From assembly GCA_905178155.1 (NCBI GenBank), contig CAJINV010000001.1, positions 11,169,009 to 11,233,008 on the forward strand: a stretch of 64,000 nucleotides of DNA, read 5' to 3'. Below, one piece after another: positions 1,486 to 25,500 of this stretch. Source of the DNA: Amoebophrya sp. A120 (Eukaryota; Protista; Dinoflagellata). The position numbers and the translations under genes were made by a program. Under the pieces are notes generated by a model. The model ran no database searches and was not told the origin of the DNA. It was given only the letters and a program-made list of their open reading frames with translations. The first letter of the stretch is position 1; each line of letters begins with the position of its first letter.

Positions 1486-3111
1486 ATGAGCAGTCCGGAC
1501 CTGCTTCGCTGCACGCGGACTGGGTCCAGCAGTTGCGAGAGCAGTGTCCCGTCGTCTCGCCGGGGGCAGGAGCGCAGATCGCCTCCAGGATCATCTTCGT
1601 ACAGAAGAAACGGAGCCGTCGGTAGACCTCGACAGGCCTCGCGTTCCAACGCCGCGGCCACGAGGGCCGCAGGACCGCCTTCCTCGAATTTGTTTAGCCG
1701 CCGGAGCAATTATGAGATGAGCAACACGCTGACACACGACCAAGACCGGTCCCGGTCGTACCTTTCCGACGAGGATACTTCCTCTTCTTCCAGCGAAAAC
1801 TCTAGCAGCGAAGACAGCGATGCCGTCGAGGAATGGAAGTGCGCCAGTGAATCCAGTTGGATTACAACCGACTATTCGTCCAAGGAGTCATCCTCCGGAA
1901 AGTACAAACGCGTTCCGGACAAGACGCACAAAAGACACTGGCTCTTGGCGGCGGTCACCTTGGTTTTTTTTTGTGGTGCTGCCAGTTTTGGCTACTGCTA
2001 CGCCTACCACAGAGAAACGCTTGTAAAGTGGCTGCCCTTCGTCCGAAGCCTACCGTTCTTCGTACCTGCGGGCGGAGCAAACGGCAGCAACGGTGCAGCG
2101 ATCACGCCAAGGTCTTCCAATGGCAGCGGAGGTGGTGATGGGTCCGACCACCGAGGTACAACTTCTAAGGATATAGTGCTAGCAACATCAGTCTTGCAGC
2201 CGGGGAAAGATAACGATCAGGCAAGCGAGGCCGCAGCACCAGAGCACGAACAAGGCGGTAGTGCTGGTGAGCGATCTTTATTACCGCCGGGGCGTGGGCG
2301 GCCCACGAACCCGCCGAATGTTCCACATTCGGACTCGCACTCTTCCTTCGCTGCGACCGATGCGTCTTTCAATCCTGCTACTGGTCTGCAAACGGAAATA
2401 AATGCCAGTACCGAGGAAAACGAAACTGAAGCTCCTGTTCTGGCAACCTCGACGTCGTCATTGGCCTCTGGCACGTCGCTCGGTGCCGGTAGCGTGACGG
2501 GGAGCCCGGGCACTGCAGGGCTACTCGCTGCGGGCGAGAGTAGCCCTAGTGCTGGGCGAATATCATCCTCCGCACCTGTTCCGAACATCAGGACGAGTCT
2601 GAGTCCTGAGGAAGTCGACGCGAAAGATATCGCCTTGCTACGGTCGGCAGTGGGTGTTGAGAGTTCCGGCGGCGCAGCCGACAATGCATCATTTCCTAGC
2701 CAGCACACCGGCGGTGCTGCGAACGGTGCAGTGGGTGCCGGCGCAACGCGGGGCTTGCCACCAGACCACCCGGGTTCCTCACCGATCGGGAAAAAAGATC
2801 CCTCAACCTACACCTCTCCGGGGGCAGTGCAAAGCCAAAGGACCGACGTCAGGGGTGATGATGTACTAGACGAAGGAGCTTCATCGCGCAACAAGGGCGC
2901 GCAAAGCGCCCTTGCATTGGCGGTGGGTGAAGCTGCGACGACCGCTCTTCCCGAGCGGAAAACAAGCACCAACAGCTTGCTGCGCGCACTAATCGCGTCC
3001 CCAAAATCAGTAGCGGTTTCTATTCTCAAGAAGACACCGCTAGCAGGATCACTGCCGGCAAGCGATGACGCCGACGCAGCTCGCAACCAAGACGATGAGG
3101 AAGGTACTTGA
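1486..3111 (+). CDS. Hypothetical single-pass membrane protein, Ser/Gly/Ala-rich (541 aa)
   Basis: Long ATG-initiated ORF with one hydrophobic helix (WLLAAVTLVFFCGAASFGYCYAY) flanked by low-complexity regions; no recognisable family. Confidence 0.65.
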   Translation: MSSPDLLRCTRTGSSSCESSVPSSRRGQERRSPPGSSSYRRNGAVGRPRQASRSNAAATRAAGPPSSNLFSRRSNYEMSNTLTHDQDRSRSYLSDEDTSSSSSENSSSEDSDAVEEWKCASESSWITTDYSSKESSSGKYKRVPDKTHKRHWLLAAVTLVFFCGAASFGYCYAYHRETLVKWLPFVRSLPFFVPAGGANGSNGAAITPRSSNGSGGGDGSDHRGTTSKDIVLATSVLQPGKDNDQASEAAAPEHEQGGSAGERSLLPPGRGRPTNPPNVPHSDSHSSFAATDASFNPATGLQTEINASTEENETEAPVLATSTSSLASGTSLGAGSVTGSPGTAGLLAAGESSPSAGRISSSAPVPNIRTSLSPEEVDAKDIALLRSAVGVESSGGAADNASFPSQHTGGAANGAVGAGATRGLPPDHPGSSPIGKKDPSTYTSPGAVQSQRTDVRGDDVLDEGASSRNKGAQSALALAVGEAATTALPERKTSTNSLLRALIASPKSVAVSILKKTPLAGSLPASDDADAARNQDDEEGT

Positions 3112-3311
3112 GTCGTGTAAGTTACTTGTACTGATAAGGGAGCAGCTGCTCAGGGACAGCAACTACCAGCAGCTCCAGTAGTACCAGTTTTTTTTCTTTT
3201 GGAAATATGTGTTTTTCTGTTCCGATTGATTATATAGGGCACCGACACGAGAAGTCCATCACCAGTCCTTACTTTGCCCTTTCTACACTAAAAGCTCTGC
3301 ATCACAATAAA

Positions 3312-4496
3312 ATGAACATACTAGATTCCGAAGTGGAGGGACTCCAAAAGAGGATTGCGGAAGTAGAAGCAGAAATGCACGAGTTGCGCCGCGATCGAGA
3401 GCAGGCACGTCATCGGCTTCCGAAGGGTCGCGGATTGTACTACGTGAAGCCCGGCCCTGGAAGACCGCTCGGTATGCTACTTTGTCATATCCTGCATAGG
3501 CCTAAAGCACTGTCACGTGTACTTGGAGATACATATGCTAGACAATAATATCCCGCTCGGCGGACTGCATGTTTGGAAACAAAGCACACACACATACTAT
3601 TTCACTTTTTCCTTTTCATTGCAGGCTCGCTCCACATCCAAGCCGATAAGGACTCTGTACTTTTGGCCGGCGACTGTGAAATTGAAGCCGCGGTTGAGAG
3701 ACAGGAGAACTGGATCGCGAGCCAACGAAAGATGGACCAGTTGCCGATCGTGGGAACGCTGCGCAGCTACTACCCCCCTAACGTCATATGCAGGAAACGA
3801 AGTCCGACCGCTTCCTCGAGCGCCCTCTCGTCCTCGGCCGAGGACCTCGAACCGCTAGACGAGCGTGCTTTGGCTACCTCGACGAACATGGACGAGTTGA
3901 CGATGCAGCGTCCCCGGCGCCTGGCGGAGAAAAAGAAGAGCAAAATTGCACGGGAGCAAAAAGAAATGGCAGTGCGGCAGTCTTCACAAAACGAGGATGG
4001 TAACGCTATAAAAACAATGGCGGACGACGACCACGTCGATGAGGATGCACCGCACCGGCCGCTTCACGACCCCGAAGTAGAACTAGGAGAAGGAACACCT
4101 ACCGCGGGAAAGGCAGTAGATGATGGTGCCCAGGCGGCGGCGACTCCTCCGGGTCACGACGCAATAATCGATTCGCCACACCGAAGCGGAGATGGTTCAG
4201 CCAGCTCCTCGTCCAGGAGCCCAACTTCTTTCCCTGCAACCTCTCATCATGCTCAAACAGAGTCTGATCATCATGGAAAAAGTACTAGCACAACTGTGAC
4301 TCTTTCTTCCATCGTGCCCCAGCGACCTCAGGCCAATGCTCTTGCGGCCTTGCCAATGTCGCGCGTTGACCAGTTGAAGCTTAAGCTGCAGGACCGAGAG
4401 CGTCGACTCGTTGAGATGAAGAATGCCAAGGAGCGCGGCTGGGATCGTCAGGGCCAAGCACCGCCAGGAATCGGCTTCTGGAAAACTGCGAACTGA
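3312..4496 (+). CDS. Hypothetical coiled-coil protein, 2 exons (3312-3471, 3625-4496; ~343 aa)
   Basis: GT-AG intron 3472-3624 (GTATGC...TTGCAG) joins ORFs 3207 and 3573 in frame (..PGRPL-G-SLHIQADK..). N- and C-terminal coiled-coil-like segments. Confidence 0.65.
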
Positions 4497-5947
4497 TTTG
4501 CAAGTGAGGCAAGCGGATATGTATAAAGGCAGATGTTGTTTTCGTTTTGCAACAAAAAGGAGCAAACTACGTCAGCTGTGCTTGTGAAGGTCGTGAGACA
4601 CAGCCCGCCACTGCGTCTGCTACAAACTCATGTGGCCGGTATCTTGAGATTGAGATTGCCGTTGGCGGCCAAATCTCGTACGCAATTAATGTGTCACGAC
4701 CTTGAAATTACTTCTGCATACTGTTGAAGCCCAGAGAATACAAGAAATGCCACAAAGACAAAGGCTACCCATGCCAATCCGCACAAAGACCGAGAGAACA
4801 CAGAAAATTCTATTTTTTGAGGCTGCCCGTGCCCCGTTTCGCTTCTTTTGCACGACATGCTTGTTTCTTATCTACATTTCCCAATTTTGTCTGATATACT
4901 CCAAAGCAAATCCCTCCAATAGCGATTGAGAGTCCACCAATCGCAGATCTTGGCATGTTTCCCATTTACTCGATGGAAGAAACATGGATGCAAATTTTAG
5001 TTTTCTATGCAGGAAATGTTACATCTCTTAGCGCCGAGGAAAATAACTGCAGACCTTTAAAACTCCATTGCCTGACGAAAGAAAAACAAAATGTGTTGCT
5101 CGTGTCTGCAAACCGCTTTAAAAAAGACACAAATACAGCGAAATCTAATGGGCGAACAATGTGTGATTGTATTTGTTGATAAAGAAGCATGACTGACCAC
5201 TGTCATTGAATACAGGACGAACGCAGATAAGTGTGTTTCTATCGATAGGTATATGTAAAATAGGCAAAGCTGTACCTACTGTCTTCAAAAATGAGATCAC
5301 TACCGGTTGTCGCATTGAATTATGATTATCGGTGCTGGGATCCCATTATCGTTCCGGAAACGGACTTAGCAAAAGTTGATTTCGATCATGAAATAAGTCA
5401 AGATCAAGCTCGATCTCTAGGACCAAATTTGAGAAGTTATCAGTGATGGTGATGACCCATCCACCAGCACTTTTGTTGTGTACCGTGACTGCAAATGAAG
5501 ATATGGCAACCAAAAAGAAAATGAAGATCTCTCACCGAGATGTCTCTCTGTATCTAGTTTTCTATTCGTAATTTGTTTCTTGATCCAAGAAAAAGACGCT
5601 TTCTGACTCGATTCGAAACGATCTTCAGTGATGTCTCAATTTCAGGACCTCAGCCAGCCCCATAAAGACAAAACACGAACAACAAGTGGCAGTATTATGC
5701 CCCCAGCGATAGGATTAAGACTATAGCGATAAGAATTTCGTTGTGCACCACCTTTGTAAGTATTGTGTATCTCCCCGGTGTCCGTCTTTCCGAATCGTGT
5801 ACCCAGCTGCATTTCGCCGTAGAGTTCTCCCCCCCGGTGTGTGTCTTTCTACGTAAGTAGTTGGAAAATTGTTCAAAATCAATCACGAGCACGCAGAATT
5901 TAGATTTACCATACGCAAACACACATTTTTCTTGAAAAAACACCACG

Positions 5948-8900
5948 ATGACGTCGGCTTCGTCCTCTACATCTGAAAATGGTTGTTCATCCCGGTTTCT
6001 ACGGACGTTGGGCCTTTCCGTGGCAGTGTCTATGCCGGTCTTATGGTATTTGCGGTCTCGATATCATGCCTCCTCTTCCACAAGCACTTCCTCGAAGAAA
6101 AAAAGCCGGTCTCGCAGTCGCAGTAAAAATCCCAAGCAGGAGGAGACCGCAGCGAAGAGAAGAAACAAACTGAGGCAGAGCGAGAAGCCTAAGGAAAAAC
6201 TTCCTTCGGATGGCCCGCTGCTCCGCGTGCACCTCTGGCATGGCTCACAGACAGGCACGGCTGAGGAGTACACGGAAACACTCGCCGCGGACTTGGCTTC
6301 TGCGTTGGTCAAGCAGGGATTTCCGGCTAGCAAGTTTTTTTCGATTCAGACGAAGTCACTGGAAGACTGCGAAGATTTCGAGCGAGAATTCGACTTCCAG
6401 GACGACGATGAGGAGGACGACAGTACTGCCACAGGATCCGATTACGAGCACCAGGGTTCTGGAGCAGGTGGAAGAGCTGGCCCTGTGGACGGAGTACCTC
6501 CAATGTCATCCAGTAACAAGAAGGAAGCAGAAATATGTGTTGATGGGGAACAAACTACATCACGAAGAACGAGAGAACACTTGCCGCTTCACATCTTCCT
6601 CGTTTCCACCTACGGCGAGGGGGACCCGGCGCAGTCGTTATCCTGAGTAAAAACGTACCCACACCAGAGTCAGGATGGGGATTTTGCAACACAAACCTGG
6701 GAGTTTTGTAAGTCACGCATGACAAGTTGCGCTCTGCAGTGTAGTGCAGGTTAGCAAGTGCAGCCGCATCACAGATTCATCAGCTCATCCTGTTCACAGC
6801 ATCACAAATTCCAAAACACGATTAGAAATGGCTCTCATGCGGATGCGCATTACAAGTCTTCCTGTCTTTGCAAATCTGCATGACAACTCTGGTTTGGGTA
6901 CGTTTTTACACAGGATAGTCGTCCGAGGATTTTTACGACAAGCTGACCGAGATGATCGACGGGAGGGCACAGAACGTGTTCAGAAAGCTCCAGGCGGCTG
7001 TCATCGGGTTTGGCAACAGCACGTACGTGCACTTCAACGGCGCGGCGAAGACGCTGATCGAGCGGTTGACGAAGCTGGAAGGGACTTTTTTCTGCTCCGA
7101 ATCCTACCTGGACGACGCGACGGACCTTGACGAGCAGTGGGCCCCCGCCGCCGCAAACGTGATCAACGCGATAAAAAGGATGACCGTCGAGTTTCTGCAA
7201 ACCCGCACGGACGTGCGAAAATGTTGGGTCTTGCCAAACGACAGCACATTCGGCGGAGCCACTGGTGCGATGACGGGCGAGACCAAGAAGGTGGAGTTCT
7301 TAACCGAGTCCGAGTGGGCGTCGATTCTGAAGGGCGTTGAGAAAAATGAAGCCAGCGCGTCCCCCGCGGAAATGCGGGCGCGCTTTTGTCCGCTAGCGGG
7401 GAAGTTGCAAAAGGACTCTCCTCCAGCTCCTGCGTCCAGCTCGTCGAAGGAAGTTCCCCGCGACATTGCGGCAACGGCTTTGTTCGGTAGAAAAACGGTC
7501 AAAGTAACGAGGCAGGACCGGCAATCGCAAGTTGTCGACTACGGAGCAGCAGCCCCTTTCGACAAAAAAGTTTCGCGCGGAAGTACGGAGGTACTGGTGG
7601 AGTGGCCAGAAGCTTACATGGCCGGGATAAACGGCGTTTTGGCGCACAATATAGACGTCTTGCCGGACAACGACAAAACAGACGTTGCGGCGTTCTTGGC
7701 GTATTTTCAGGTCACGCACTACGACAACATGCGATGGGTCTGGACAGGCGCGGCGGCAGGTGGTAATAGCACAGAGGAAAACAACAGCACGTCGTCCACC
7801 GCGCCTACGACTTTATCCGTCCCGTTTCCCAGCGGACTTTCCCTGGCCCAGATTTTTGGGCAGTACCTAGATTTACGACGCTTTCCTAAGCTCTCCGAGG
7901 TCCGAAAGTTCGTTTCCTTCGCGAAAGATTCGGATGCGGAAAAGCTGCTGCAAGCCGTCTGCACGGACGAGCATCTGGCGCAGTTTCGCGACGCGCGCTT
8001 GAGTTTCGCCGCGTTTTGGCAGGTGTTTTTGCAGGATTCGGTGCAAATAACGTTGGGGGAATTTTTTCAGATTTGCCCGCGGATGAAGCCCAGGATTTTC
8101 ACCGGCAGCAGCAGTCGGGTCTGCGACAAACACCACCTCGCGATGCTCTTGTCCGCGGTGCACGAAACCAGTCACGCGAAGCTGGACCTGAAACTAGTGA
8201 AGAAGCTGGTGGCCACCAACGACAAGGAGAAGCGACTGGACGAGAAGCTGCTGAAATCGCTTGCGACAACTTATTCCGGGCAGTACTTCGGCCAGTGCTC
8301 GGATCACCTTTCCGTCGCGGAAGTTGGTTCGGTCCTGAGCTTGAAGGTGAATCCACCAACCCTGCACTTTCCGGAAAATCCGAAAATCCCGCTCGTCCTC
8401 ATCTCCGCAGGCACCGGGCTCGCGCCCTTCAAGGGCTTTCTCGATCAGGAACAGGTGCTGAAATCGAAGCGGGATATTCTCCTCTTCTTCGGGTGTCGAA
8501 GTCGGGAGGAGGACTTTCTCTACCGTGACTACTTTATCAAGCTCGCGCCGGAGTACGGTGCGGAGAAGGGTGGGCCGCATCAGCAGCAGAACAAGAGAGG
8601 AGATCAACATCCTTCCGCGGCAATGAATGGGGAAGATGCAGCAGTAGCGGTGGCGGATAGAAGTGGGGACGCACAAAATCAAGGAACAAGAATTCCAAGA
8701 GCAGATCTACCGCTGAAGAACTTCAAGTTGGTGTGCGCGTTTTCGCGCATGAGCAAACGCAAGGTGTACGTGCAGGACAAGATGAAGCTCCACGCACAGG
8801 AGCTGAAGGACTTGCTGCTCTCCCAACGCGGGCAAGTGCTAGTCTGCGGCAGTACGCACATGGGGCAAGGCGCCCGTGAGGTGCTCACCATGGTTCTGGG

Positions 8901-8964
8901 CCGCGCGGAAATGCAAGCGCTGCAAGACCAAAAGCGGTACCAGGAAGAGGTCTGGGCCGTTTGA
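5948..8964 (+). CDS. CPR: NADPH-cytochrome P450 reductase-like diflavin oxidoreductase, 2 exons (5948-6638, 6923-8964; ~910 aa)
   Basis: N-terminal membrane anchor; flavodoxin motifs GSQTGTAE, STYGEGD and GFGNSTYVHFN; FAD/NADPH motifs PRIFT, AGTGLAPF, LFFGCR and KVYVQD; C-terminal YQEEVW. Excising the TIR element 6639-6917 plus one repeat gives STYGEGDPAQSSEDFYDKL. Confidence 0.85.
6639..6917. mobile_element. TIR introner-like element (family E), 279 bp, direct repeat GTCGT
   Basis: Left arm TATCCTGAGTAAAAACGTACCCACACCAGAGT vs reverse complement of right arm TATCCTGTGTAAAAACGTACCCAAACCAGAGT; GTCGT at 6634-6638 and 6918-6922; removing 284 bp restores the CPR frame. Confidence 0.93.
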
Positions 8965-9582
8965 AGAGCATGCGTCCAGGTTGTGAAGACATTGATTTCG
9001 AGAAAATTCGGCGCATGTTGTAGTCTTGAAGAACGACATGAAAGTCACAGCGACATCACGACGACTAGAGTACAGACATGAAGGATCTGACCGCCACGAA
9101 GTAGCGCGATGAATTCAAAAACGCGATAGCATCTTAATCTTACCACTTCGAGAAGGCTGATGTTGATGACGGAGATTTTGTTTTGTTCAAGGTGTCGAGC
9201 CCCCTGTGATACAGCACGCACGACAGAAAATCTAGATTCGTTCACATCTTTGTCCTCGGTGCGTGTCGGTTCAACATCGCAATCTTATCATGATATCTGC
9301 TATCGTCCTTGTCGTTGTTAGCCTCAACCTCAACGTGGTCATCCTTATATCGTTTTGGTGCTCGTCTTGATGCTATGTTTTTGTCGTGGCTGGCCTTTAT
9401 CTTCATCGTTTGTCATCCTGTACGTAGGCGATGGAATCGGAACCACAACTAGTAATGTCGCTTTCTCGATGGTAGTTTGCGAAAGGTTGTTCGCTTTTGG
9501 CATGAACGAGTCAAGCAACATGATCTACACATCGCATCGAAAAAAATCATCAAGAAAGGTTTAATACCGTCCAAGCTGCAAG

Positions 9583-12355
9583 ATGGGTCTCCTTTCCACG
9601 TTGACCGTGAGCCACTCTTTGCAGAATTTTCTGTGGCGGAATGAGTCTTCCGTGGCGACCACGGAGGACCGCGCAGTGAATCCGGGGCATTTCGTGAGAG
9701 TGACCCCGACACCGCTCCCGGACCCCGTTTTGGTGTGTTACAGTGATGACTTTGCGCAAAATGTGCTTGGGTTTGACGTGGACGACGCGGCGACGAAGCG
9801 CGAGCTGGAAGCTGATTTACGCGCGGTGCTTTCCGGCAACGCGATCCCCGCCGCGTGGGGACCGTGGGCCACGGGGTACGGAGTCTCCATCCACGGGCAG
9901 TGGGTAACGGACAGTCCCCGGGGCGGCGTGCACGGATACGGTGACGGACGCGCGATGTCTGTGGTGGAAATCAGGGCGTCGACAAATTATGGCAGAGCCA
10001 CACAGGATGAAGTAGAAGTTTCTTCTTCTTCAGGTGCAGTTCTGTCTAAGGGGGTTGTTCCGGAGAAAAGTTTCGCAAAGGTTGAGCGATCTTCCGAAAT
10101 GCCATCTGCAGGTGCACCCCTTTATTCCTGGCAAACCCGTCGAACGATGATCAAGGATTTCCTCTACCCCGCCCCCGACCGCTGGGAGTTTCAGCTTAAG
10201 GGTTCCGGGCGCACACCCTTTTCCCGGAGCGGGGACGGACGGGCGGCGCTCCGTTCCAGCGTCCGGGAGTTCTTGGCGAAGGAAGGAATGCACTTCCTCG
10301 GCGTGCCAACCGCGCGCGCGCTCTCCCTGGTCGTGGACACAGAGTTGAAAATTCAGCGGCAGTGGTACCCGGAAGCGCAGAATAAAGACGTGCAGCTACG
10401 CGCCGATCAAGTGGGCAACCGGGAGGAAGTGGCAATGTCGAGGGGAGCTAGTAGTGCAGCTCTACTTGCGCTTACTCCAAGGCCGGGTAAAATTTTGTGG
10501 CCGAGCAATGGGGTTCCCGAGTCGCAGATGGCTGCGAATCAGGAGATTTTTCGGGAGGAGCAGGCCGCAATTCTGACGAGAGTGAGCCCGAGCTTTCTCC
10601 GCGTGGGCCAAGTGGAACTGTTTGCAAAGGAAAAGTCAGTCGGCGAGTTCCGGAAGCTGCTGGCCTACGTCCTGTGGCGCGACTTTCGACCGTATTTACA
10701 GATTGGAAATAGCACGGCGACTACCGGGTCGTGGCCTGCAGATGTGAGTGGGCAAAAACAAAAAGCGAAGGAGTCACAGCGAACCTTACCGCATGAGCAA
10801 GAAGCGCTTGATGACGCACAGGCGTCTAGCTTGCTTACGGTGAAAAATCTGAAAATCTTTCTTCTCATCTTTGCGCACAGACTGGCGTTTTTGCACGCGG
10901 AGTGGTTGCGGGTTGGGTACGTGCAGGGGAACATGAATTCCGATAACTGCCTGCTGAACGGGTACTCCCTTGACTATGGTCCTTTCGGCTTTCTCGAGCA
11001 ATTTGATCCGCTATGGTGCCCTTGGATTGGCGGCGGTGAAAAGTTTAGCTATTCACAACAACCAAAGGCAGGCAAGGTCATTTTGTCCACTCTGATTCGC
11101 CGTATTTTCGCCTACCGCGAGCAGCTGGCATTTTTGCTTTTGGCGAATGAAGGGAAGGACACGACCGACTTAGAAGCAGGTACAACTACCTGCGAAATAA
11201 TGTCCGAAGGTGGCGAAGCGAAGTGCAGGTCGTCGCAGTCAAAGTCCAGTGGGGCAGCAGCAGCAGCAGCTCGGATGGAAAGACAAGATGCAGGCCGGAC
11301 AAAAGCCGCGCTTTTTGACGAGTTGCGCGACTTCGGCGACAACCTCGTGGAACTCTACATTGAGGACATTTTCCGTCCGTACCACGATGAAAACGCCCGC
11401 GCGAGACTCGGATTTTCCACTGCGTCGGATCAGCTCCATCATCTGCCGCTTTTCGATGTTCTTTCTCTGCAGCGAGAGCAGCAGGCTACTGAGGCAAGCA
11501 GCGCGTCGGCCGATGGAAGTGGAGGTACACCCACGGCACATGATTTCTCGCTTACTACTGCAAGAAGCGCAACCGCAAGCGCCCTTCTGCAGAGGCTAGA
11601 GGAGACTTTTAAGTCGGGCACATCAACAATGTCACGTCGGGCAGGTGGAGCTGGAAAGAAAAGGAAGCACGCCGATCCTCTTCGCCTGTATGAGGATTTG
11701 GAAGATATCATGCGGAGAGAAGAAATGGATTTCACTTTTACATTGCGAGCCCTCGGCGATATTGTTGACATTGCGACGGTGGGGGACCAAAGTGAAGAGT
11801 GCAAGAAGAAGAAAGAAGATGTGGAGATGTCCTGTGCGTTATTCAACCCGAAACCATTTCGCCGCGCTCGGGGTGATCAGCTTACTCCGCTGCCCCAGCA
11901 TCTCCGGAAATGGCTGCTGCGATGGAGTGACAGTCTGCAGAAGCATTACAGTGGTGCAGCTTCGGACGAGGATGCGAGCCATACACATGCGAACTACATC
12001 TCTCCACCGGCCGTGGCAAGAGCAGACATGAAAGCCAGTTCCCCGCAGGTGATACCGCGCAACTGGATGCTAACTGAAGCGTATGAGGCCGCGGAGCGAG
12101 GGAATTTCACAAAGGTTGACGAATTAAAGACACTGCTGAAAACACCGTACGAAGATGTGCGAGAAGATACCCAGTGGGTCCGCGCAACGCCAGAGTGGGC
12201 ACACGGAAAAGCTGGAATATCTTACATGAGCTGATCTTCGTATATGGAACCGAAATCTTGCGTCACAGTCACATCAGAGATGTTTTGTAAGGCAAAACGC
12301 CTTACAAAACGTATCGGATCTGACTGCGACGCGGAGTTTCGTTTTCATATCGTAG
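9583..12355 (+). CDS. SELENOO: SelO-family protein adenylyltransferase (UPF0061), probable selenoprotein ending S-U-S-S (exons 9583-12242, 12355; ~886 aa)
   Basis: Motifs GYGDGRA, QLKGSGRTPFSRSGDGRA.LRSSVREFL, GVPTARAL, GYVQGNMNSDN and DYGPFGF. The TGA at 12232-12234 is followed by TCT TCG and, after removal of the element at 12243-12349, by TAG. Confidence 0.88.
12243..12349. mobile_element. TIR introner-like element, 107 bp, near-complete hairpin, direct repeat TCGTA, inserted in the SelO stop codon
   Basis: ~51-nt arms (TATGGAACCGAAATCTTGCGTCACAGTCACATC.. vs reverse complement TATGAAAACGAAACTCCGCGTCGCAGTCAGATC..) around an AAAAC loop; TCGTA at 12238-12242 and 12350-12354. Confidence 0.88.
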
Positions 12356-13010
12356 AACAACCTGCTGGATTTCTAGGTAGTAGGTTGTAGTACTCGTCCT
12401 CAACAACAAGCGGGAGTAGCTCAATTATGATTACCGTGGCCACAGGAGCTGTTCTCTCGGTACATGCAGTCATCACTGACACAGTCGTCGCTGTGCGCAA
12501 GAAAAGTGCAGATACTTCTGACCTGCCATGATCTGGTAACCAAATGCCTGCGCGCGCGCGCGCAGAGCGCGCGCCGGCCCACGAAGCCGGCGCGCGCGCT
12601 CTGCGCGCTTGCGATATTGCTTAGCAAACGCAGCGCGAAGGCAGTTGCCGTTACCATATAGGGCAACCGCCGGGAGGCGTGAAGGTCAGGGAAATGGCCA
12701 GAAATGAAGCGGGAGAAGGGAAAAAAAGCGGACCAGATGGGAAAATGGCCAGGAGGTCAAAAATGTCGCAAAAATGGCAGAAACCAAGCGGGAGAAGGTG
12801 TAAAAAGAGCATTTTTGCGGTTTGGCCCACTTTTTATCTGAAAAAGAGTTGGTCTATTTTTTGCTCCGCCCGCTGGTCAGCTGCGTTGGAGAAGCAGGCC
12901 CGCGACCTGTCCGGAAGCCTTGGGCCGCTTCGTAACTGGAAAAAGTTGGAAAAAAATGGCAAAAATTTGCTTCATAACGTGGGTGGAAGCAATCGTCGGA
13001 TTTTGTCCAG

Positions 13011-13355
13011 ATCACCCGGGCCGCTTGGAAAATGGGAAAAGAAGAAAAATCTTGCAAAAGCGCAATTCCTCCGCAGGCTTCGAAATTGCCAGTCAGCTGC
13101 GGTCGGTGAAAATGTGCAGATCGCCCGGGCCACTTGGAAAATGGAAAAAGACAAAAAAATGCGCAAAAGCGCAATTCCTCCGCAGGCTTCGAAATTGCCA
13201 GTCAGCTGCGGTCGGTGAAAATGTCCAGATCGCCCGGGCCACTTTAAAAATGGAAAAAGACAAAAAAATGCGCAAAAGCGAAATTCCTCCGCAGGCTTTG
13301 AAATTGCCAGTCAGCTGCGGTCGGTGAAAATGTGCAGGTCGCCCGGGCCACTTAG
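13011..13355. repeat. 109-bp tandem repeat, three full copies plus a partial fourth
   Basis: GAAATTGCCAGTCAGCTGCGGTCGGTGAAAATGT recurs at 13082, 13191 and 13300 (period 109). Confidence 0.9.
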
Positions 13356-13615
13356 GAACCAAAAAAACAAGCAAAAATTAAAAAAAAACGAGAACCCTCG
13401 GCAGGCTTAGAAACTGGCCACCAAGGGTGGTCCGGCGGGCGCGCGCTTGCGCCGTACCATCGCGATTGGGAAAAAAAAACCGCACTAGAAGCGGGCGGGG
13501 GTATGTCACAAAATCCCTATTTGCCCTGGGTTGTGGGCAGAAATTCGGCATCTTCCCCGGGTCTGAAATGGCCGATTTTGGTGGCCCAGCCCGGGTTCTT
13601 TGGTTTGCGGTTTTC

Positions 13616-13779
13616 CACATACCTTCCTGGCCAGGTGGCCAGTTTGTCAATCATGCAGGGGGCTAGAAAGGATGCCCCGCTGCGAAGTTGGATCTTGCCC
13701 CCCCTCTGGCCACATACCTTCCTGGCCATGTGGCTAGTTTGTCATGCAGGGGGCTAGAAAGGATGCCCTGCTGCGAAAT
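13616..13779. repeat. ~70-bp direct repeat, two copies (period ~95 bp)
   Basis: CACATACCTTCCTGGCCA.GTGGC.AGTTTGTCA..GCAGGGGGCTAGAAAGGATGCCC.GCTGCGAA at 13616 and 13711. Confidence 0.85.
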
Positions 13780-13785
13780 AGCAGA

Positions 13786-13932
13786 CCGGATTTCGCCTTC
13801 AATGCTTATCGCAGGAGCCTGCGGGCCGCCGCGGGCGACAGTAGTTGTCCGCGGCCCTTTAGGGCCGCGGGGAAGTGGTGGAGCCCGCGGCGGCCCGCAG
13901 GCTCCTGCGATAAGCTTTGAATGCGAATCCGG
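13786..13932. repeat. Long inverted repeat (~50-bp arms) with a nested hairpin
   Basis: CCGGATTTCGCCTTCAATGCTTATCGCAGGAGCCTGCGGGCCGCCGCGGGC pairs with GCCCGCGGCGGCCCGCAGGCTCCTGCGATAAGCTTTGAATGCGAATCCGG; inner hairpin CCGCGGCCCT-TT-AGGGCCGCGG. Confidence 0.9.
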
Positions 13933-15699
13933 AAGCCCCCGATGACCCGCGATAGATGGCAAGATTTACTTTAAGCTTAAGGGCCGCGGACAACACAGAA
14001 GAAGAAGTGGGATTCTAATTAAAAAGAAATGGTGGCGGCAGCCGCGCGGCGAAAGCGCGGCCCGCAGGGCCGCGCTTGCGCCGCGCGGCTGGTTTGGCTT
14101 TCGCGCTGGTTAGATTTTCGCGCACGCATTTGGTTACCAATATCGCCCTCCGGGCGCGATCTTCATACTTGTTTGCAACGAAGAAACTGAATACACAAAC
14201 GTTTTTGGTGAAGCCAAGTCGTGACGATGGTCGTCGTGCCCTCTACACGCCTGCGGCTGATTTAGATATTTTCATTCTTGTCACCGGTCGACATTCATTT
14301 TTGATTGCATTTGTAGATCATCTGCACCACAGGAGATGTTGCTGTTGTCCTTTGTCAATATCTATGATTTGATTTCCATTTCCATCTCGTCCCGCCCTGT
14401 CTGCGGCTGAAAGTCTGTCTCTTTATAGTATTTCGCAATAGTGAGTCACTGTCACACTCAACACTCTCGCTGCGATTTTGATTTCTAGTGGTGAGCCACT
14501 GCAGCTGTTCCTAAAAACAGCGCCCAAGAACGGAACGAAATGATATCACCTAGGATGGTGTACTTGTATGCCCAGCGAACGATCTTCATCTATCTTCTGT
14601 TGTATATTAGCGAACCACGTTGTCGAGGCACTGATCTGCAAAAATGTCGACTCAAACCGTATCCATGGGTTTCCTACGATCCGAATCAGTTCATGGTCAG
14701 TTGCTCCATGTAGTGCAATTCACGAGCCTGAGGTATTTCAATTTCTTGTAGACGAGTTCGGTACTATTTGCTACGTCCATGCACAAAACAGATCTACTTC
14801 CACTGCGATGATCCTGTTGCTTTTGACCTTACATTTCGAATGCATTGGCGCCTTGCAAATGCAACAGGCAAGCAACTCATTTAAGTTTTGCTTGTAACGG
14901 CTTTTTTTGAAAACGAACAATTCGTATTTTCCTCCGACAAAAAGGAGTCCAAGGCTATTTTCATTTTTGAAAGACAATAGAATTGGAAAGATCGTGCGCA
15001 CTACTCGCGAAACTGTGTGAAAGTGTTAATATGATCTCGGTCTCCCGGACCTGGACTTCATGGTATTAGGACTAGCTCATAGTAGAAATAAAGGACGGAG
15101 AACAGCGACGCTAAGGCACGAGAAGGCTACAACGGAATAACTTTTTCGCTTGGCCCACCTGTGTCTAGTAGTTTTACAATCGAAAAGAAGAAAACGAGAT
15201 GCAACGACAACAAGGAACAAACTTACGAGGTTTCTACCACTTATCAACCTGTTGAACTACGACTTGAGTACTATCGAAAAATAAGCGACATCATAAGGCT
15301 ACAAATCAGAACATCAATCCATCGTTAAAGGGAAGAACCACCGGAAGATCGAACGACAGGGCGAAGCCGTCGACCACCTCCACGTTGGTATTCCAGAAGC
15401 GATTTTGGCCAGACTAGGCTACATCGCTCGATACCCAGAATAAAGTGGACGAAGATAACGAAAGGCAATGAACTTCCAACTCCAAGCCTGATCGAGAACG
15501 ACAGATGAAATAAACGAAGCAAGCTGGAGCTGCTCCTGCTGTGTCAAGAAGCACCACACAGAAGACCATTGTTTTTTGCCTCTGTTCCTGCTCGTAATAA
15601 AGTGCGGCGACTTGATAAAAACAGCGAATTCATCGATCAAAGCAGCTACAACATCCGTCGAATAAAAGTTACTTACCCAGCTTTATCAGAAGCGCAGCC

Positions 15700-17529
15700 A
15701 TGGCGGGTTCACTGGACGACTCTTCCGTGGTACGGCAGTTCGAAAATGGGCTGTACTGCCAGTCGATCGTCAGCGTCGTGTTTATGGCGTTCGCCATGAC
15801 ACTCATCCTCCTCGGGAGACGGGGGGAATTTTTCACGCGATTCGCCATCGGTTTCATCGCTATGCTGGCGGTGTTGCTGGCGTGGCCGATTTATCAAATG
15901 TAAAAATGTCTGGGTCTGGAAGAGTCATGCGGCTTTTGCATGACACAGAGGGTCTGGCATGGAAGCTCTAGCATCACAGGTTTCGAGAAGCTGCCGCAGT
16001 GCCGAATCCGCATGACAAATGCCCCACTTTGGTGACAAAAAGTGGGCAGCTTTTGCTGCCTATGCGTGAGAGACTTTTATGTGTTGTGAAATGCGCATCA
16101 CAAGTTGCATTATTCCAGACCCAGACATATTTGCAATGCATACGATTATTTTGAGCAAGCTGTCCGCGTCCATCCACGTGGAAAGCCAGTACGTTTTTCT
16201 CGTGTTCTGGGTCGCGCCGTGTGCAATCGCAGGCTTGTTGCTGGCCTGCTTTCTGAAAGAGAAGTTTTTCTTCATCGCCGGCGCGGCGGCGGGCTGGTTC
16301 GTTGCGGCGCCGTTGATTGGACTTGTCAAGTACCTCATCCACTTCTCCAGGGGCGAGAATTACAACGCAGCCGAGGCCACGGGAAACTGGGGGGACATCA
16401 TGTATTTTGATTTTTTTTCCATAAATGGTTCGAGTTTGTACTTGTCCGCTGTGTTCATGCGGCGTCTGCGATGTTGTAGTTTACACTTTCAACTCAAAGT
16501 GAAAGCGGTACTAGAATAGAGGTAGGGGGAGTCGGTTCTTCGAAACTAAGAAATAATTAAACCACGACCTCCTACATTTCAGGTGGATTCTCGTCACAAT
16601 CGGCATCATGATCGGATGTGGTTTTCTGGTTATGTGCATGGAGAAGAAGCTCCGCCCTTGGGTGTACTCCCTCTTCACTGCCGGTCTCTTTAGCTCGGCG
16701 TTCGGCGAATTTCTCATCCTGATCGGCGCCTGGGCCGCCATGGCTGGCGCATCAACGAAGGAACAGTGCATGGAGCAACTTCTGGACGATACGATCTCGA
16801 TCGGAGAGAGCGGGCACCGGGACTTTGGCGTGTACAGTTTACTTAAAACTTCCTACAACCTTTCATTTATCTTCTTGTGGTCTTCTATTTTTTCCATATT
16901 GCCATTGTTTCTGTCTGAGCGACAGTGCTCACGCGCAGCTCTATGGTGCGGCTAGTCGGAAGATTCATGAACGAGATTTCGACCCTTCGCAAACCCGCCA
17001 GGGATGATGTAATTCAGCAACTACACAACACAGGTGGACGTGGCAAACCGTTTTTCCAATGCGGCTCCCCCTGCCGCTGATGGGGTTGCGTGACGCGCAC
17101 TTGTACGCAAACCTGGATCGGTTGGAAGCAGACCTCGAGAACATCAACTTTCCCGCCGACAAGGCCGCCGCCATCCTTCAAGCCTACTCCAAACAGTTTC
17201 GGTTTCAGGACGGATTGGTCGCCTGGGGCGTGCTCCTCGTTTGCTTTCTCTTCACGTTTGTACTGGCTTTCAGGGGCTGCAAGAAGAAGTGTTGCTCCGG
17301 ATTCTGTTTTCCGGGCTACAAAGACACCGCAGCCGGCGACGGCATGAACGGAGGACCGAAGCCAACCGCGACCAGTCCGTTTTACCACCGATACGGCGGG
17401 CCGCGGAAAGTTGCGGAGAAGAACCACTGGGAGTCGGAGTCCGAGGTAAGCAATTACGATTCCGACTCGGATGACGAGCTGTACATGGAAGAGTACATCT
17501 ACGAGTCGGACGACAGCTTGGCCTTTTGA
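15700..17529 (+). CDS. Multi-pass membrane protein, possibly DUF4203/TMEM198-like, 4 exons (15700-15891, 16148-16401, 16583-16831, 17034-17529; ~396 aa)
   Basis: One TIR intron (15892-16147) and two GT-AG introns (16402-16582, 16832-17033) join four hydrophobic ORFs in frame; about 7 TM helices and an acidic tail. The family assignment is tentative. Confidence 0.7.
15892..16142. mobile_element. TIR introner-like element (family A), 251 bp, direct repeat CGATT
   Basis: TATCAAATGTAAAAATGTCTGGGTCTGGAA ... TTCCAGACCCAGACATATTTGCAATGCATA; CGATT at 15887-15891 and 16143-16147; removal gives LAWP-IILSKLSAS. Confidence 0.93.
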
Positions 17530-19573: not shown

Positions 19574-22500
19574 ATGGCAGAGGTCTATAATTTTGCTGCG
19601 GAAGCTGCGGAGCTTCATGTTCATCATATTAGTTCGGCTTCGCTCCGCGGTGAGGAGCAGTTTGATCGGCGTGTGGACCATTTTGACCGGCAGCGCAAGG
19701 CGCCGCGGCTGTACTTTCAGAAAATCCACAATGAGCCTTTTCCGACGCAATGGCAGCGGGGACCGCCCAAGCTCCGGGAGGAGGTGGTTGCAAAGTTGGA
19801 AAAGCTGCAGAAAGTTCCCCGTGCTTCGCTGCGGTTCACGGCCGCCAACAACGACGTACCGCCGGCGATTGTGCTGCGTGTCGCGCTGCGGCAGGTGAAC
19901 GCGCACCGGGAACTGCACCTGTTTGAAACGCCGGAGGATTTCGCCGTGTTATGCGACCACTACAAAATCCCCTGGCGCAGCATCTGCCGTGTGCGAACCG
20001 TGGCGGAGTTGACCGCGAAGGCCAGCTTTTTCGAGCAGAAACCCGCGTTGCCGGATATCAAGCCGTACCGGATCACCGACTTTGTCGACGGGACGTTGGA
20101 CCCGCTGCTGGGCTCCGGTTTGGAGCCGGCGATTCTGGACACCATGCCAGATGCCCTGCGCCAGGAGTTGCAGGATCGCGTAGAAAAAGCGAAAAAGACG
20201 GTCATGAAGCTTTCCACGTCCGAGATTCTGAAGCAGGCCGCCGAGGCCGAGCGCGCACGGGCACCACCGAAGCGGAAACCGAAATGGGTCTACTGGGAGG
20301 GCTTGCGGGCGCGGAAGGAAGCGGAGAGAAAGAAACGCGCGGAGCACCAGCTGGCCGTGATAAATGAGGAAAGCCAAAGTCCGAAGAAGGGTAGTTCGAA
20401 TTCCCCATCAAAACCCAATTATAAGTCCGCTTCATCAACAACCTCAAGCAGTCCGAGCAAGGCCGCAGCGGCCTCGCTTGACATCGACCGATCACAGTTT
20501 GCGGTGCCTGAACCTGGGTACGGGAACCTGGTCCAGAGGTTGAGTGACCTCTCCGGCTTTCTCGCGAACTCGGAGGAGATGGTATCAACTGTAAAAATGT
20601 CTGGGTCTGGAAACTTGTGATGCTGGGTGGCGTATCATGAGGCGGCGACAAGTGCTGGCTCAGCATGACAAATCTCTGAGCTTCGAGGTGTTGCCTATTC
20701 TGCATGACAAACTGCGTTTCTGCATGACAAAAAAACGCGGCTCTTGGGTAACGTGCATGACAGACTTTGGGGTCATGCTGGCAGAGCATGACAGACCTTC
20801 CATTCTTCCAGACCCAGACATTTTTACAATCCATAGATGGTGCCGATCCGCAACCCCGCGATCGGTCCTCTTGACCGGAAGCTGCAGCGCGATGCGGCCT
20901 ATCCTGTGCAAAAGTATCGTACTCGTATTGCAATCATGCATTACAAATCTTTTCCTGAAGGTAAATTCGCATTACAAATTTCATTTCTCACGCTGAGGAA
21001 ATTTGTAATGCATAATTTATACGAGTACGATACTTTTGCAGTTCATACGGCCGTGCGCGAGGGAGAGTATCCGCATGTTGGCGTGTGGAAGATTGGAAGC
21101 GAAAAGATGCGACTGCTGCGCGACAAGCAGCGGAGCAAACTACTCGGCGCAGCCGGCGACACAGGCACAGCTGGTCTTTCCCCACTGCCTCGAAACGGCG
21201 CGCCCATGAGTTATGACCAGAGGATCGAGACAGAGCGGTTCAGTCCAAAGCGGTATGGGTATCCGGAGCCGCCGGTGCACTTGGTGTCGCCCGACGAGCG
21301 CAAACTCTTCGCGGACGACTTTAATACCGCTTCCCGCATGTTCTCCTCGTCACAGAGCACTAGGCTGACAAACCTGGAAGGCTCTCGCGGCTCCCGAATG
21401 CGCACACGAAACAGCAAGTCTTCTTCGTCCTCGAACTTAGATCCGCGTGCGATCCCCTTCAGCAGCCCCGAGAAACTGCCCGGCCGGTACTTGAGCGGGA
21501 ACGGAACGCAGGCGTATCAGGTGGGGGGCCACCAGTCCAGCGTCGACTTCAACTTGGGGCTGGACGCGGTGCGCGGGAACCGATCGAAGCTCTTCGACCA
21601 GTCAACCGAGTTCGGTACAACTGGGGAGCAAAGCCAGCATTTCGCGGACACGTCGGTCATGTTCTCGGACTGCAGTGCGCGGTCGCGGTCCCACAGTCCG
21701 GATGGGCTGCTGGTCCGCGAAAATTTCCAGAACAGCTTCACAGTGAATGGCGTGTCGCCGCAGGAGGAGAGAAACCCGGAGGACCTGGCGGGGCGGGTCG
21801 CTTTCCGAAGCCAGAGCCCGACGTCCGTCGTAAATTACAAGCGCGAGTTTTCCGCCCCCGCAGAATCCTACCGGCATCTCTCCCGGGTAGACCGCTGGCG
21901 CAACGACGCGCTGCGGTTTGCGCGCGAGAGTCAGCGGCTGAGCAAGGGGCCGAGGTATGTGCGCTCGTTGTTGGAGATTTTAACGGACCAAGTCGCGGTG
22001 CTGCAGCGCAGCGTGGAGTGGTCCGCAATCAACTACGCCTATGAAATGGCGTTGCCGCAGTCTGACAAATGGCCAGAGGAGGAGGATCGGTTGCACCACG
22101 CCGAGGAAAGCTTGTTGCGTTTGCAAAAGCGAACCATTCGGAAACAGGCGGAAGCGGTGGGACGCCAGGCGGACGTGTCCGACGTACAGCACGCCTTGCT
22201 CGCGAACTCAGCGCTGGAGTACGACCGCAGTCCACAATCCCTCGGCTGCATTCGCGACAGTCTGCCTCGGGCGCCGCAGTTGGAATTTACCACCAGCACT
22301 TCTGGAAGTGGGGCGCGCGTGGCGCACAGCCGTAGCCGCAGCCCTGGTGCGCAGCTGCACCATTCGACATCTAGGGTGCTCGACATTCACGACAGCACCA
22401 CGACATATAACACCACAACAGGAGAACAAATTGGAGAGCACATTGTGCACCACAGTCGCAGCACGACGCAGACCTCCTTTTTCAAAAGCAACTCGCAGGA

Positions 22501-25500
22501 GTACAACGGGTATAATAGTAACCGGAACATGGGAAGCACGCAGAATTCGTTTTATCAGCCGCCGAAAAGTAAGTCCGGCACGCAGCAGTCGTGGTTCAAG
22601 CCACCCTGGACTTCGAAGAAGTCCATGACGCAGTCCTCCTGGTTCAATGCCTCGCAGACGAGCTTTTACTCCAAAGGATCGCGCGCCACGACAGCTGGCG
22701 GTGCAGGACCATCCTCAGGAGGGACAAACAGTTCCTCTGCCGGCACGACCCGCGTTCCCTCCCCCCGATATCAGGTCGAAACACCCCAGGGCTTCTTCAA
22801 AGTGAGCGTAGCCATGCCAACCAGTTATGAATTGCAAATATGTCTGGGTCTGGAAGATTGCCAGATTTGTCATGCGTGTCCAACATGACTCGGAACTCTG
22901 TCATGCGTAGGTGCAAAAAGATCGATGTATCTGTGATGCAAAAGCGCAGTCTGCCATGCGGAATAAGCTACACATAGCAGCTCAAAAACTTGTCATGCTT
23001 GGCCACGGATGACAGTGCGCCCAGTGTTCCCTGGTTTGCATCACAAGTTTCCAGACCCAGACATTTTTGCATTTGATACCAGCACGACATCCGCGATTTT
23101 CCGCAGCATCGACCGCCAGGAGTCCACGAGCCCGTGGCGTAGAAACACACACTCCGTGTTGCGCGACGGTGGAGTTGCCGAAGTGGCGACCTCGCACGAA
23201 TCGCCGCGGCGAGGTAGGGTTCGCATGAGCACGAAGTCGCAAAGTTTTTCGCCCGCGAAAAACCCGAAGAATTCGCCGGCGAAGGGCGGAAACAGAAAAC
23301 GGCGGGCGCGGGGCGAACGAACATCATCCTCCGCAGTTGCCGTTGACAACAGCAAGAATAGCAAAGAGAAAGATCATGAAGATGCCCCCCCAGGGTCCGG
23401 ATCCTCCTCCGCATCATCCGCGAGCACTGCGTCCGCCTCCAGTAGTCCGATAAAACTGAGGAAGCAGCGGCCGCCGGTCACTGGCGTCGTGGGACCGCCC
23501 GGGGAAAGTACGTACAAGCCCCCGGACCCGGTTCGCGACTTCAAGGCTGAGCTGATGGAGAAGGGGATGAAGAGCACCAACATCAAGCCGGTCCCACGCC
23601 TCCCGGATCTGCGTCCTAACGTCCGGGACAATGCGTTCACCAGTCCGGCTTTCGTCCGCTACACCACGACGGCCGCAGTGTCGTCGCAGGCACGGGTGCT
23701 GGAAGTCACCTCGCTCTACAACGCGCACCCAACGCCGATGACAACCAGTAAGATGATGGCCTCCGCGTCGCAGGAGGGGTGGAGAACGGAGCTGGAAAAC
23801 AGAAACAACAGCAGCTCGACGGAATTTTCTTCGGACGAGGGAATCATTCCGAAACCGGACGAGCAGGTGCCGGTGATCTCGAAAAACGTGGGCGTGTGGC
23901 GAGTCCCGGAGCCGCAGTCTCGCACACTCTTGCCGGCGGAGGCGCAGGCCGTCGACGGCCTGATTCACCTGACCGGGCAGAAGGCGCCGGAGTGCGGCAT
24001 GGCGGTCGTGCAGGACGAGTTCGCAGCGCGAGCGGAAGAAGAGCGAATTTTGGAGGAACAGGAAGCGGAAATCGAAAGACAAAATCGACGTGCCGAGGAG
24101 TTGGAAAGGCAGAAGGCGGTAGCGTCGCGCAGTACAAGTCCCGCAAGCTCGCCCAAGAATGGAAAGCACTCTCCCTCCACCGGCGTGCACAGGCAGAAAA
24201 CATCCAGCCAGCTTCTCAACAACAGCGGGAACAAACATCAGCCTGAAGTAGACTCGTCCTCAGCTGCTGCCTCACCGAGTGCGTCACCGAAAAATTTTGT
24301 GAGTGGCAAGCAGCTCGCCACGGGGACGCACGAATTGGACTCGCACAACGCAACTTTGGTCGTGGCCCCCGCGTCTTTTGACACGAATCCCCACACAAGT
24401 ACGACGTTCACCACGGAAACCGTTTTCGAGAAGAGTGGCAAGGGGTCTTTCCGGAACCCGAGCGAATACGAAATCCACCACTCCAAGCAGTTGGAAACGC
24501 CACCAGCAACAGCAGGAACGGCGCATCCCGGCAGCGGACTGCAGAGTTTGCATGGCACGAAGACCAGTTTCTTTTCCACTGCGTCCTCGATCCAGACCGC
24601 CGGTTCCATGTTCTCTTCCGCCGGATTGGAATCACGCGGTGGAAACACTTCGAAAACGCTTCCACCATTGGGAGAGGGGGAGATGTTAATAATAATACCC
24701 CCAAATAATTATAACGCGAGTATGTTGAGCTACCGCCCCGATGGCAAGGACTACATCTCGGTTTTAGACAACGAGTACCTGCGTGTGCCCAAAGATACGG
24801 ATCCGCTGAAGGTCTTGGTCGAGTCCGCGAACAAACTCGTGGCGCATCCGTTGCCGTCGCGGCGAGCCGCAAGGGATTTTGACACGCTGCTGGAGAAATG
24901 GAAGCGCGACTTGATGCGCAGCGAGCGGATCGCGCGTCAGAGCTGGCGTTTGATTGAATATTCGCCCTGCGGCGAGCCCTTCTTCGAATTCTGTGTGTGT
25001 GACGTGTGCAAAAACGCGTACTGGCTGAAGTATCGGTATCACCACCCGGCGGACTCGTCGCAGGACAAGGAGCTAGACCCCTTGACCGGGCAGCCACGGA
25101 ACCCTGAGGAAAAGGACAAAAAGCAAACCGATGGCACAACAGCCACCTCCGGGGCTGGTGGTCCAGCTGCTGGCGCCGAACAGCAACAGGATCCTAACGC
25201 TGCTGCATCTGCTTCCAATGACAACACGTCGAGTGCGCAGCAGCTCGCTTTGGCCCTCCGGAACGCGGACAAAAAAACCGTTGTTCTCCTGATTGACGGA
25301 AAATACTTGCTGAACCCCCTTGCGCTGGAAGCCGGCCGCGACTCGCTGAAGATCGGGTACGGGGTGGCGAACGTGCCTCCTTACGTGTGGGAGGACCAGG
25401 TGGCACCCAAATACTTCCTCGCGGACGTCGGGTTCGTGATCCGCGGCTTCGATCGGTTCGCGGCCGCCCCGCGCGTTTTACCGGACGTCGCGCCCCACTC

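Follow-up and report, generated by a model that had tools for sequence, protein, structure and literature searches.

Selenoprotein O (SelO) of the dinoflagellate Amoebophrya sp. A120 is encoded by a gene whose stop codon is split, in the genome, by a short fold-back element. The gene lies on the forward strand of contig CAJINV010000001.1 (assembly GCA_905178155.1), within the 64,000-nucleotide (nt) stretch from 11,169,009 to 11,233,008 that was analysed here; this whole stretch is referred to as the window, and its first letter is position 1. The called open reading frame (ORF), 9583-12234 (+), encodes 883 amino acids, and its frame ends ..GISYMS-TGA. The gene and its 3′ end comprise the following features, with the evidence for each in parentheses.

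9583..12231, + strand: SelO (selenoprotein O / YdiU) coding sequence to Ser883, ending ..WAHGKAGISYMS (ORF list, Pfam, PDB)
12232..12234, + strand: TGA, read here as selenocysteine (Sec), at the invariant C-terminal Cys position of SelO (homologues, paralogue, Sec machinery)
12235..12242, + strand: TCT TCG (Ser-Ser) and the TA of the split stop codon (sequence, comparison with the family's flanks)
12243..12349, + strand: fold-back introner element of 107 nt, resembling a miniature inverted-repeat transposable element (MITE), with TATG...CATA ends and without an ORF of its own (fold, family copies, skip in RNA-like run X1)
12350..12355, + strand: TCGTA, the right target-site duplication, plus G; joining TA to this G gives TAG (sequence, X1 joint)
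12356..12505, + strand: 3′ untranslated stretch joined to the coding end in the X1 contig (0 mismatches)

The identity of the gene is well supported. The 883-residue product scores 166 bits in Pfam family PF02696 (SelO), whose cut-off is 22.8 (E 1.5e-48), and in the PDB it matches the Escherichia coli YdiU/SelO structures 6iii, 9jym and 6k20 (E 4e-35). The motifs of the AMPylating pseudokinases, which serve nucleotide binding and catalysis, align to the YdiU/SelO structures, namely KGSG..DGRA (KGxG..DGRA in the family), NxDN and DYGPFGF; in the motif HGVMNTDN, Gln replaces His in the window protein, as it does in the orthologue from Amoebophrya sp. A25. The window gene thus shares its domain and catalytic motifs with bacterial YdiU, but the bacterial enzymes have about 480 residues, whereas the window protein is extended to 883 by large insertions. 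The closest public protein, again from strain A25, is 50-60% identical. No further in-frame stop occurs inside the 883-residue frame.

At the 3′ end of this frame, the genomic letters at 12226-12242 read ATG AGC TGA TCT TCG TA. The pentamer TCGTA occurs twice, at 12238-12242 and at 12350-12354, on either side of the 107-nt hairpin, and is followed by a G at 12355; this anatomy had been described in the original prediction, made from the letters alone, and holds base for base. If nothing is removed, the frame continues as ..GISYMS*SSYMEPKSC...GSRL*. If 112 nt (the element and one TCGTA) are taken out, it becomes M-S-TGA-S-S-TAG, and only then does the C-terminus take the form ..S-[Cys/Sec]-Ser-Ser-stop.

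The element at 12243-12349, TATGGAAC...TTTTCATA, is a single, near-perfect hairpin. Its predicted folding energy is -59.9 kcal/mol, compared with -24.9 +/- 3.3 kcal/mol for dinucleotide shuffles (z -10.6; none of the 200 shuffled sequences folds as stably), and an inverted-repeat search gives two arms of 52 nt each that are 79% complementary. At least six other copies exist in the genome with 75-89% identity, so that the family has at least seven members including the window copy, and the matches all end at TATG...CATA. Five of the six further copies were examined closely. Their length is 107 nt in four cases and 116 nt in the fifth, and a 5-bp duplication of its own flanks each copy (TGGTT, TTCTC, TGCAG, GAACT and [G/C]ACGT, on the + strand of the loci). 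Because each copy carries a different 5-bp duplication, TCGTA is to be read as a target-site duplication. The ancestral empty site is therefore the 18-nt sequence that results from joining, ATG AGC TGA TCT TCG TAG. The Sec-Ser-Ser-stop ending that removal appears to “restore” is simply the site as it was before the insertion. Scripted removal of the element together with one duplication leaves long open frames in four of the five examined copies, which would be expected of elements that live as introns.

A number of these properties are those of MITEs: the element is short (107 nt), non-coding and bounded by terminal inverted repeats, and its dispersed copies are each flanked by a duplication of fixed length (5 bp) that differs from copy to copy. 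At the RNA level the window element acts as an intron, which sets it apart from MITEs. Introner elements have been described in the 115.5-Mb A120 genome itself, where they are non-canonical introns that form repeated families (Farhat et al. 2021, PMC7789003). The published A120 introner elements have inverted repeats of 8-20 nt, direct repeats of 3-5 nt across both boundaries and a hairpin fold; their removal is supported by RNA-seq, and no transposase is reported for them (PMC7789003). Selenium goes unmentioned in that study (Farhat et al. 2021, PMC7789003). The window element has every introner feature, that is, non-canonical boundaries, inverted repeats at its ends that form a hairpin, a direct repeat of 3-5 nt (TCGTA), membership in a repeated family, and presence in DNA with absence from RNA, as seen in the X6 and X1 contigs described below. 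All the properties of the A25 and A120 introner elements (non-GT-AG boundaries, hairpin, direct repeat, multiple copies, removal supported by RNA) are thus shared. The window element differs from the published ones in that the whole of it is one 52+52-nt fold-back, and in that it is inserted inside a stop codon, three codons past a Sec codon. An insertion inside a stop codon means that correct termination, and not only the reading frame, depends on exact removal.

Evidence for removal comes from reads and contigs of public runs, which were compared with the window over 10400-13000; for X1 and X6, one run each, the evidence consists of assembled contigs. In X1, a 2020 run whose RNA nature is a tool's guess, a 211-nt contig (depth 9.6, 0 mismatches) covers 12183-12237 and then 12350-12505, an exact skip of 112 nt, with five letters that fit on either side of the joint. 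The joint therefore has six equivalent registers (TC..TA, CG..AT, GT..TC, TA..CG, AT..GT and TA..TA), none of which is GT..AG. The bin covering the hairpin interior has a depth of 1.2 in X1, all of it contributed by the edge of the joined contig, and no contig retains the hairpin. Precise excision of the hairpin, as the original prediction had proposed, is what this contig displays, since the letters skipped are exactly the element and one TCGTA.

The nature of the two runs can be judged from their coverage. Coverage in X1 is limited to 11364-12660, toward the 3′ end of the gene, and its roughly 1,100 nt match the assembly without a single mismatch; on a high-copy repeat that lies beyond 12534 the depth of X1 is 6-7, and the repeat interior at 12662-13000 is absent from it. 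In X6 the depth is a flat 40 across the gene and 2,000-9,500 on the repeat; the hairpin is kept, there is no joint, and the contigs break inside the hairpin. X6 behaves as genomic DNA. X1, by contrast, shows no excess depth on the repeat and is confined to the 3′ portion of the gene, which is the behaviour of RNA from the same strain and places removal of the element at the RNA level. The original prediction held that mRNA with the hairpin retained would count against it; the one RNA-like dataset that covers the site lacks the hairpin.

The TGA at 12232 stands where the SelO family has an invariant Cys or Sec. Of 120 SelO homologues, 68 end in [YM]-S-C-S-S, as expected from the claim in the original prediction that the family commonly ends C/U-S-S-stop, and a further 43 end at MS, MT, FS or YS, one residue before that Cys. 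Ends of the latter kind are how a gene caller would be expected to truncate a protein with a Sec UGA. Both SelO proteins of Amoebophrya A25 stop in this way (..GVHYMS and ..GVRIMS), and orthologues ending at YMS, which might have told against Sec, most readily reflect gene callers stopping at the TGA. The window gene shares with the SelO family the position of its predicted Sec, third from the end and followed by Ser-Ser-stop, where bacteria have Cys (PMC7278666); this residue near the C-terminus, Sec or Cys, has a regulatory role through the bridge that it forms (PMC7278666). For another Amoebophrya strain, a transcriptome study has already reported selO with a single Sec UGA (Bachvaroff 2019, PMC6394959). 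The window gene differs from known SelO genes in that a mobile element interrupts its stop codon in the genome, and from the models of its relatives, which in public databases stop early at the TGA.

A second SelO gene in the same genome (contig C12) offers an independent comparison. Its last exon ends ..GKAGVRVMS TGA TCC TCA TAA without interruption. The two paralogues are about 39% identical (compared via A25 protein P0008) and both keep TGA-Ser-Ser-stop, with different Ser and stop codons: TCT TCG TAG in the window gene and TCC TCA TAA in the paralogue. That such diverged paralogues encode the same Ser-Ser peptide by different codons argues for translation past the TGA.

The genome also contains machinery that Sec insertion would need. 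Four tRNA-Sec genes were found (RF01852, 67 bits for three and 64 bits for one; called SeC with anticodon TCA by ARAGORN), along with SepSecS matches of 131, 81, 74 and 35 bits, domain IV of eEFSec (eEFSec_4th, 39.6 bits against a cut-off of 27) and pieces of SelD, the last with a Cys active site, C-G-G-C-A-C-K (locus L006, G000:C21:558497-558769, - strand). A genome-wide look for tRNA-Sec, EFSec and SPS had been proposed with the original prediction, and SepSecS was found in addition. Together with the C-termini of the family and the TGA TCC TCA TAA of the paralogue, these genes support the earlier inference that TGA 12232 encodes Sec. Two of the four tRNA-Sec genes (L002:459-532 and L003:2567-2639) each have a tRNA-Lys(CTT) as neighbour at a distance of about 1 kb, arranged alike at both loci, which points to duplication of a tRNA-Sec/tRNA-Lys unit.

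TGA codons also stand at known Sec positions in four other genes.

L024 and L025 (+), L026 (-) and L027 (+): three Sec-type GPx genes and a SelM/Sep15-like gene, with TGA at known Sec positions

The GPx genes have TGA at the active site, NVAS-x-TGA-G/D (NVASG*G, NVASI*D and NVASK*G), and the SelM/Sep15-like gene has C-P-A-TGA. All four are probably further selenoproteins that gene callers would truncate, so that the Sec genes seen in the genome number two SelO, three GPx and one SelM/Sep15-like. Two other genes were rejected as Sec controls, both being Cys forms: SelD, and the Rdx-domain match at L010 (G000:C2:7034322-7034873), which has C-R-D-C. The latter is the only Rdx-domain match, and its two in-frame TGAs were read as intronic.

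Sec insertion would further require a selenocysteine insertion sequence (SECIS) in the 3′ untranslated region (3′UTR). The original prediction had seen no canonical SECIS by eye. Rfam likewise finds none, and beyond 14139, where a search had been recommended, only a weak candidate at 14204-14266 emerged. Near the SelO paralogue, GPx and SelM loci, no Rfam SECIS is found either, and RF00031 (SECIS_1) gives none genome-wide at E <= 10. Classical SECISearch-like descriptors (AUGA, 10-14 nt, AA/CC, GA) returned nothing convincing, even in the controls. No SECIS-like element lies within 12356-12505, and the AUGA sites at 12427 and 12528 were rejected as SECIS cores, there being no adjacent helix.

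A different design is found in the 3′ regions of the genome's own Sec genes. In an alignment, the 3′UTRs of the two closest GPx paralogues have diverged save for one island, UA-GUGA-AGUGACUA[G/C] ... [C/G]U[U/A]GUUGCU-GA-UUU, in which a G-C pair of the core-adjacent helix has changed to C-G in a compensatory manner. The same arrangement of GUGA, adjacent helix and U-GA-U is found 750 nt 3′ of the third GPx domain and 320 nt 3′ of the stop of the SelO paralogue, and also at a hairpin downstream of an Inhibitor-3 gene. These five GUGA ... U-GA-U elements served as controls:

L024:2236-2293, + strand
L025:2158-2230, + strand
L026:755-701, - strand
L014:7002-6933, - strand
L028:1449-1403, - strand

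All five have the adjacent helix and a U-rich 3′ flank, with no clear apical AA. Rfam SECIS models were run on four of them, all except the one at the Inhibitor-3 locus (L028), and reported none of these. Judged by its recurrence in these 3′ regions, the GUGA ... U-GA-U element is probably the SECIS type of this genome. GUGA-type SECIS elements were reportedly described in the apicomplexan parasites Toxoplasma and Neospora, by Novoselov and colleagues in 2007. The GUGA ... UGA-U cores flanking a helix are common to the apicomplexan type and to the five 3′ regions of the window genome; the latter differ in having no clear apical AA, and the candidate in the window differs further in that its helix II is interrupted.

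Helix II of the five controls resisted alignment with MAFFT, and hence no general model was built. A covariance model made from the two GPx SECIS elements recovered its own seeds and one weak match only (14.3 bits, E 0.91, L027 1113-1161), which is unrelated to the other controls. The signature GTGA[AT], 38-75 nt, [CT]TGAT[TG]T, a descriptor that is partly post hoc, having been tuned in part after the candidate site had been seen, occurs 22 times in 278 kb. When at least five of eight helix pairs are also demanded, the five controls and five other sites remain, among them 14208-14260 of the window, on the SelO strand. Another match, at L014:6116-6171 (+, on the strand opposite the SelO paralogue), has GUGA ... 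UU-GA-UGU with six of eight helix pairs and may serve as SECIS for a neighbouring gene of convergent orientation. A second GUGA site in the window, 14441-14496, was rejected with a score at background level.

Two features lie beyond the 3′ untranslated stretch that is joined to the coding end in X1.

12534..14139, no strand assigned: 1.6-kb high-copy repeat (perfect 14-nt terminal inverted repeats TGGTAACCAAATGC, tandem array, depth)
14204..14266, + strand: candidate GUGA-type SECIS (signature GUGA-A ... CU-GA-UUU in common with the five controls)

In the candidate, helix I pairs 14204-14208 with 14262-14266, GUGA occupies 14208-14211, and GA at 14259-14260 is followed by UUU; helix II is interrupted. 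The unconstrained minimum-free-energy fold of this single-copy sequence contains helix I, a UGA/GAU loop and helix II. The odds that 14204-14266 is the SECIS of the window SelO are roughly even. The 1.6-kb repeat contains G+C-rich palindromes at 12551-12613, 13792-13927 and 14039-14091 and a tandem array of 109 bp x 3.2 at 13004-13358. Its depth in the DNA-like run (2,000-9,500, compared with 40 in the gene) suggests a copy number on the order of 50-200. The triplet ATC at 12531-12533 and 14142-14144 may be a 3-bp direct repeat.

As the genome stands, the candidate lies 1,853 nt past the stop; without the repeat the distance is about 244 nt, and in the controls it is 214-335 nt. It is possible, though doubtful, that making the window selenoprotein needs the removal of two mobile elements from the 3′ end, the 107-nt introner for the stop and the 1.6-kb repeat for the distance to the SECIS. 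Both termination and Sec decoding would then hinge on the splicing of transposon-derived introns, in a genome whose SECIS elements form a GUGA class without apical AA that standard models miss. If this is true, removal of the repeat places stop and SECIS about as far apart as in the controls; otherwise they remain at the longer distance.

We interpret the gene at 9583-12355 as a Sec-type SelO ending ..G-I-S-Y-M-S-Sec-Ser-Ser, whose stop codon is split by an introner that is removed from the RNA and whose UGA is decoded as Sec, and we assign this reading a probability of roughly 85%. The product would be the Sec form of selenoprotein O, a mitochondrial-type AMPylating pseudokinase. The insertion would be that of a non-autonomous fold-back transposon of 107 nt at TCGTA, which comprises the last Ser codon and the TA of TAG, and would have duplicated these five bases. 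In the pre-mRNA the inverted repeat would fold, and the hairpin may bring both copies of TCGTA together; the element and one copy (112 nt) would then be removed, and ATG AGC TGA TCT TCG TAG exactly regained. The UGA would be decoded as Sec via tRNA-Sec and eEFSec, directed by a GUGA-type SECIS in the 3′UTR. The data show directly how the locus is built, the element family with its target duplications, the 112-nt skip in an RNA-like contig, the Sec machinery, the other Sec genes and the conserved C-terminus; we infer the splicing mechanism (from Farhat et al. 2021), Sec insertion and the identity of the SECIS.

Several observations weigh against this interpretation. The RNA support is a single assembled contig from a run whose RNA nature was guessed by a tool, and assembled contigs cannot reveal a minority of transcripts that retain the hairpin. 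The raw RNA-seq runs X8 and X9 (2026, same species label) have 0 reads on 10400-13000 and hence provide no test, perhaps because the strain is a different one or because parasite RNA is scarce in them. The SECIS candidate at 14204 lies past the end of the RNA-like contig, at 12505, and is itself weaker than the controls (five of eight helix pairs compared with six to eight; fold z 0.0). Rfam finds no SECIS in 11500-17500 or 12350-12560; since Rfam also misses the bona fide Sec genes of this genome, these negatives are uninformative.

An alternative in which a sizeable share of the transcripts keeps the hairpin is unlikely. Such transcripts would yield, if Sec were inserted, a tail of 51 residues after it (S-S-Y-M-E-P-K...GSRL), and the retained frame is indeed open for 48 more codons after Ser-Ser, while contigs drop rare variants. 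No X1 contig lies over the hairpin interior, and a hairpin of -60 kcal/mol only 8 nt past the UGA would hinder translation. The 112-nt skip could also have nothing to do with RNA processing and represent an allele with an empty site, or an artefact of assembling a palindrome; palindromes disturb de Bruijn assembly, the X6 contigs do break in the hairpin, and the joint is known from one Logan contig of a run whose classification as RNA is a guess. Yet an assembly error would not cut out precisely the element with one duplication, and X1 does not look like DNA: it agrees with the assembly at every position of about 1,100 nt, is restricted to the 3′ portion of the gene and has a depth of 6-7 on a repeat sequenced thousands-fold in X6. 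As removal of such elements in A120 also has published RNA-seq support (PMC7789003), we consider this explanation quite improbable.

A plain stop at TGA 12232 is very improbable, if only slightly more so. The protein would end at ..SYMS with its Sec/Cys tail lost, Ser-Ser-stop would be an untranslated relic, and the transposon would have landed in what would be 3′UTR; the public A25 models, which end at YMS or IMS, agree with this, and no SECIS is proven downstream. It is difficult to reconcile with a Cys/Sec-Ser-Ser end that is nearly universal in the SelO family, with TGA at known Sec positions in other genes of the genome, and with paralogues of about 39% identity that keep TGA-Ser-Ser-stop in different codons, a pattern that requires translation past the TGA to be under selection. 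The chance that UGA is instead a reassigned sense codon (Trp), as in Amoebophrya sp. ex Karlodinium veneficum, is close to negligible. A precedent exists in that all three stop codons serve as sense codons in one Amoebophrya strain (PMC6394959). In the window genome, the in-domain TGAs seen fall on known positions of Sec or Cys (GPx active site, SelM CxxU, SelO C-terminus), save the two of the Rdx match that were read as intronic; the 883-residue frame has no other stop, and the tRNAs found with a TCA anticodon are tRNA-Sec.

With the Sec reading preferred, the locus is a neat but expected combination of two known things, introner elements and Sec-type SelO. New are the finding of an introner within a stop codon, three codons past a Sec codon, the corrected gene model, and the proof, from the target duplication, that removal from RNA regenerates precisely the empty site. 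The same holds for the outline of a class of GUGA-type SECIS elements that Rfam misses. In the corrected model the protein, which ORF callers truncate according to the original prediction and would annotate three residues short, would gain those residues and with them a redox-active selenocysteine. The selenoproteins of this genome would be hidden twice, by UGA and by non-canonical introns, and its selenoproteome is likely to be under-annotated as a consequence. The site also constitutes a natural test of the precision of introner removal, in that an error of one base would destroy a stop codon whose position is strictly conserved in the SelO family. A GUGA-type SECIS invisible to Rfam may be more useful than the main finding, and matters for mining the selenoproteomes of dinoflagellates and syndineans.

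Many further inverted-repeat elements bounded by TA, belonging to several families, are scattered through the window. They are located at 6639-6917, 15892-16142, 20583-20835, 22826-23078, 30085-30411, 38103-38369, 39368-39628, 39708-40024, 40075-40396 and 45012-45122. A shared terminal motif, ..AAATGTCTGGGTCTGGAA, occurs among these elements and is also present beside a GPx gene and beside the SelO paralogue.

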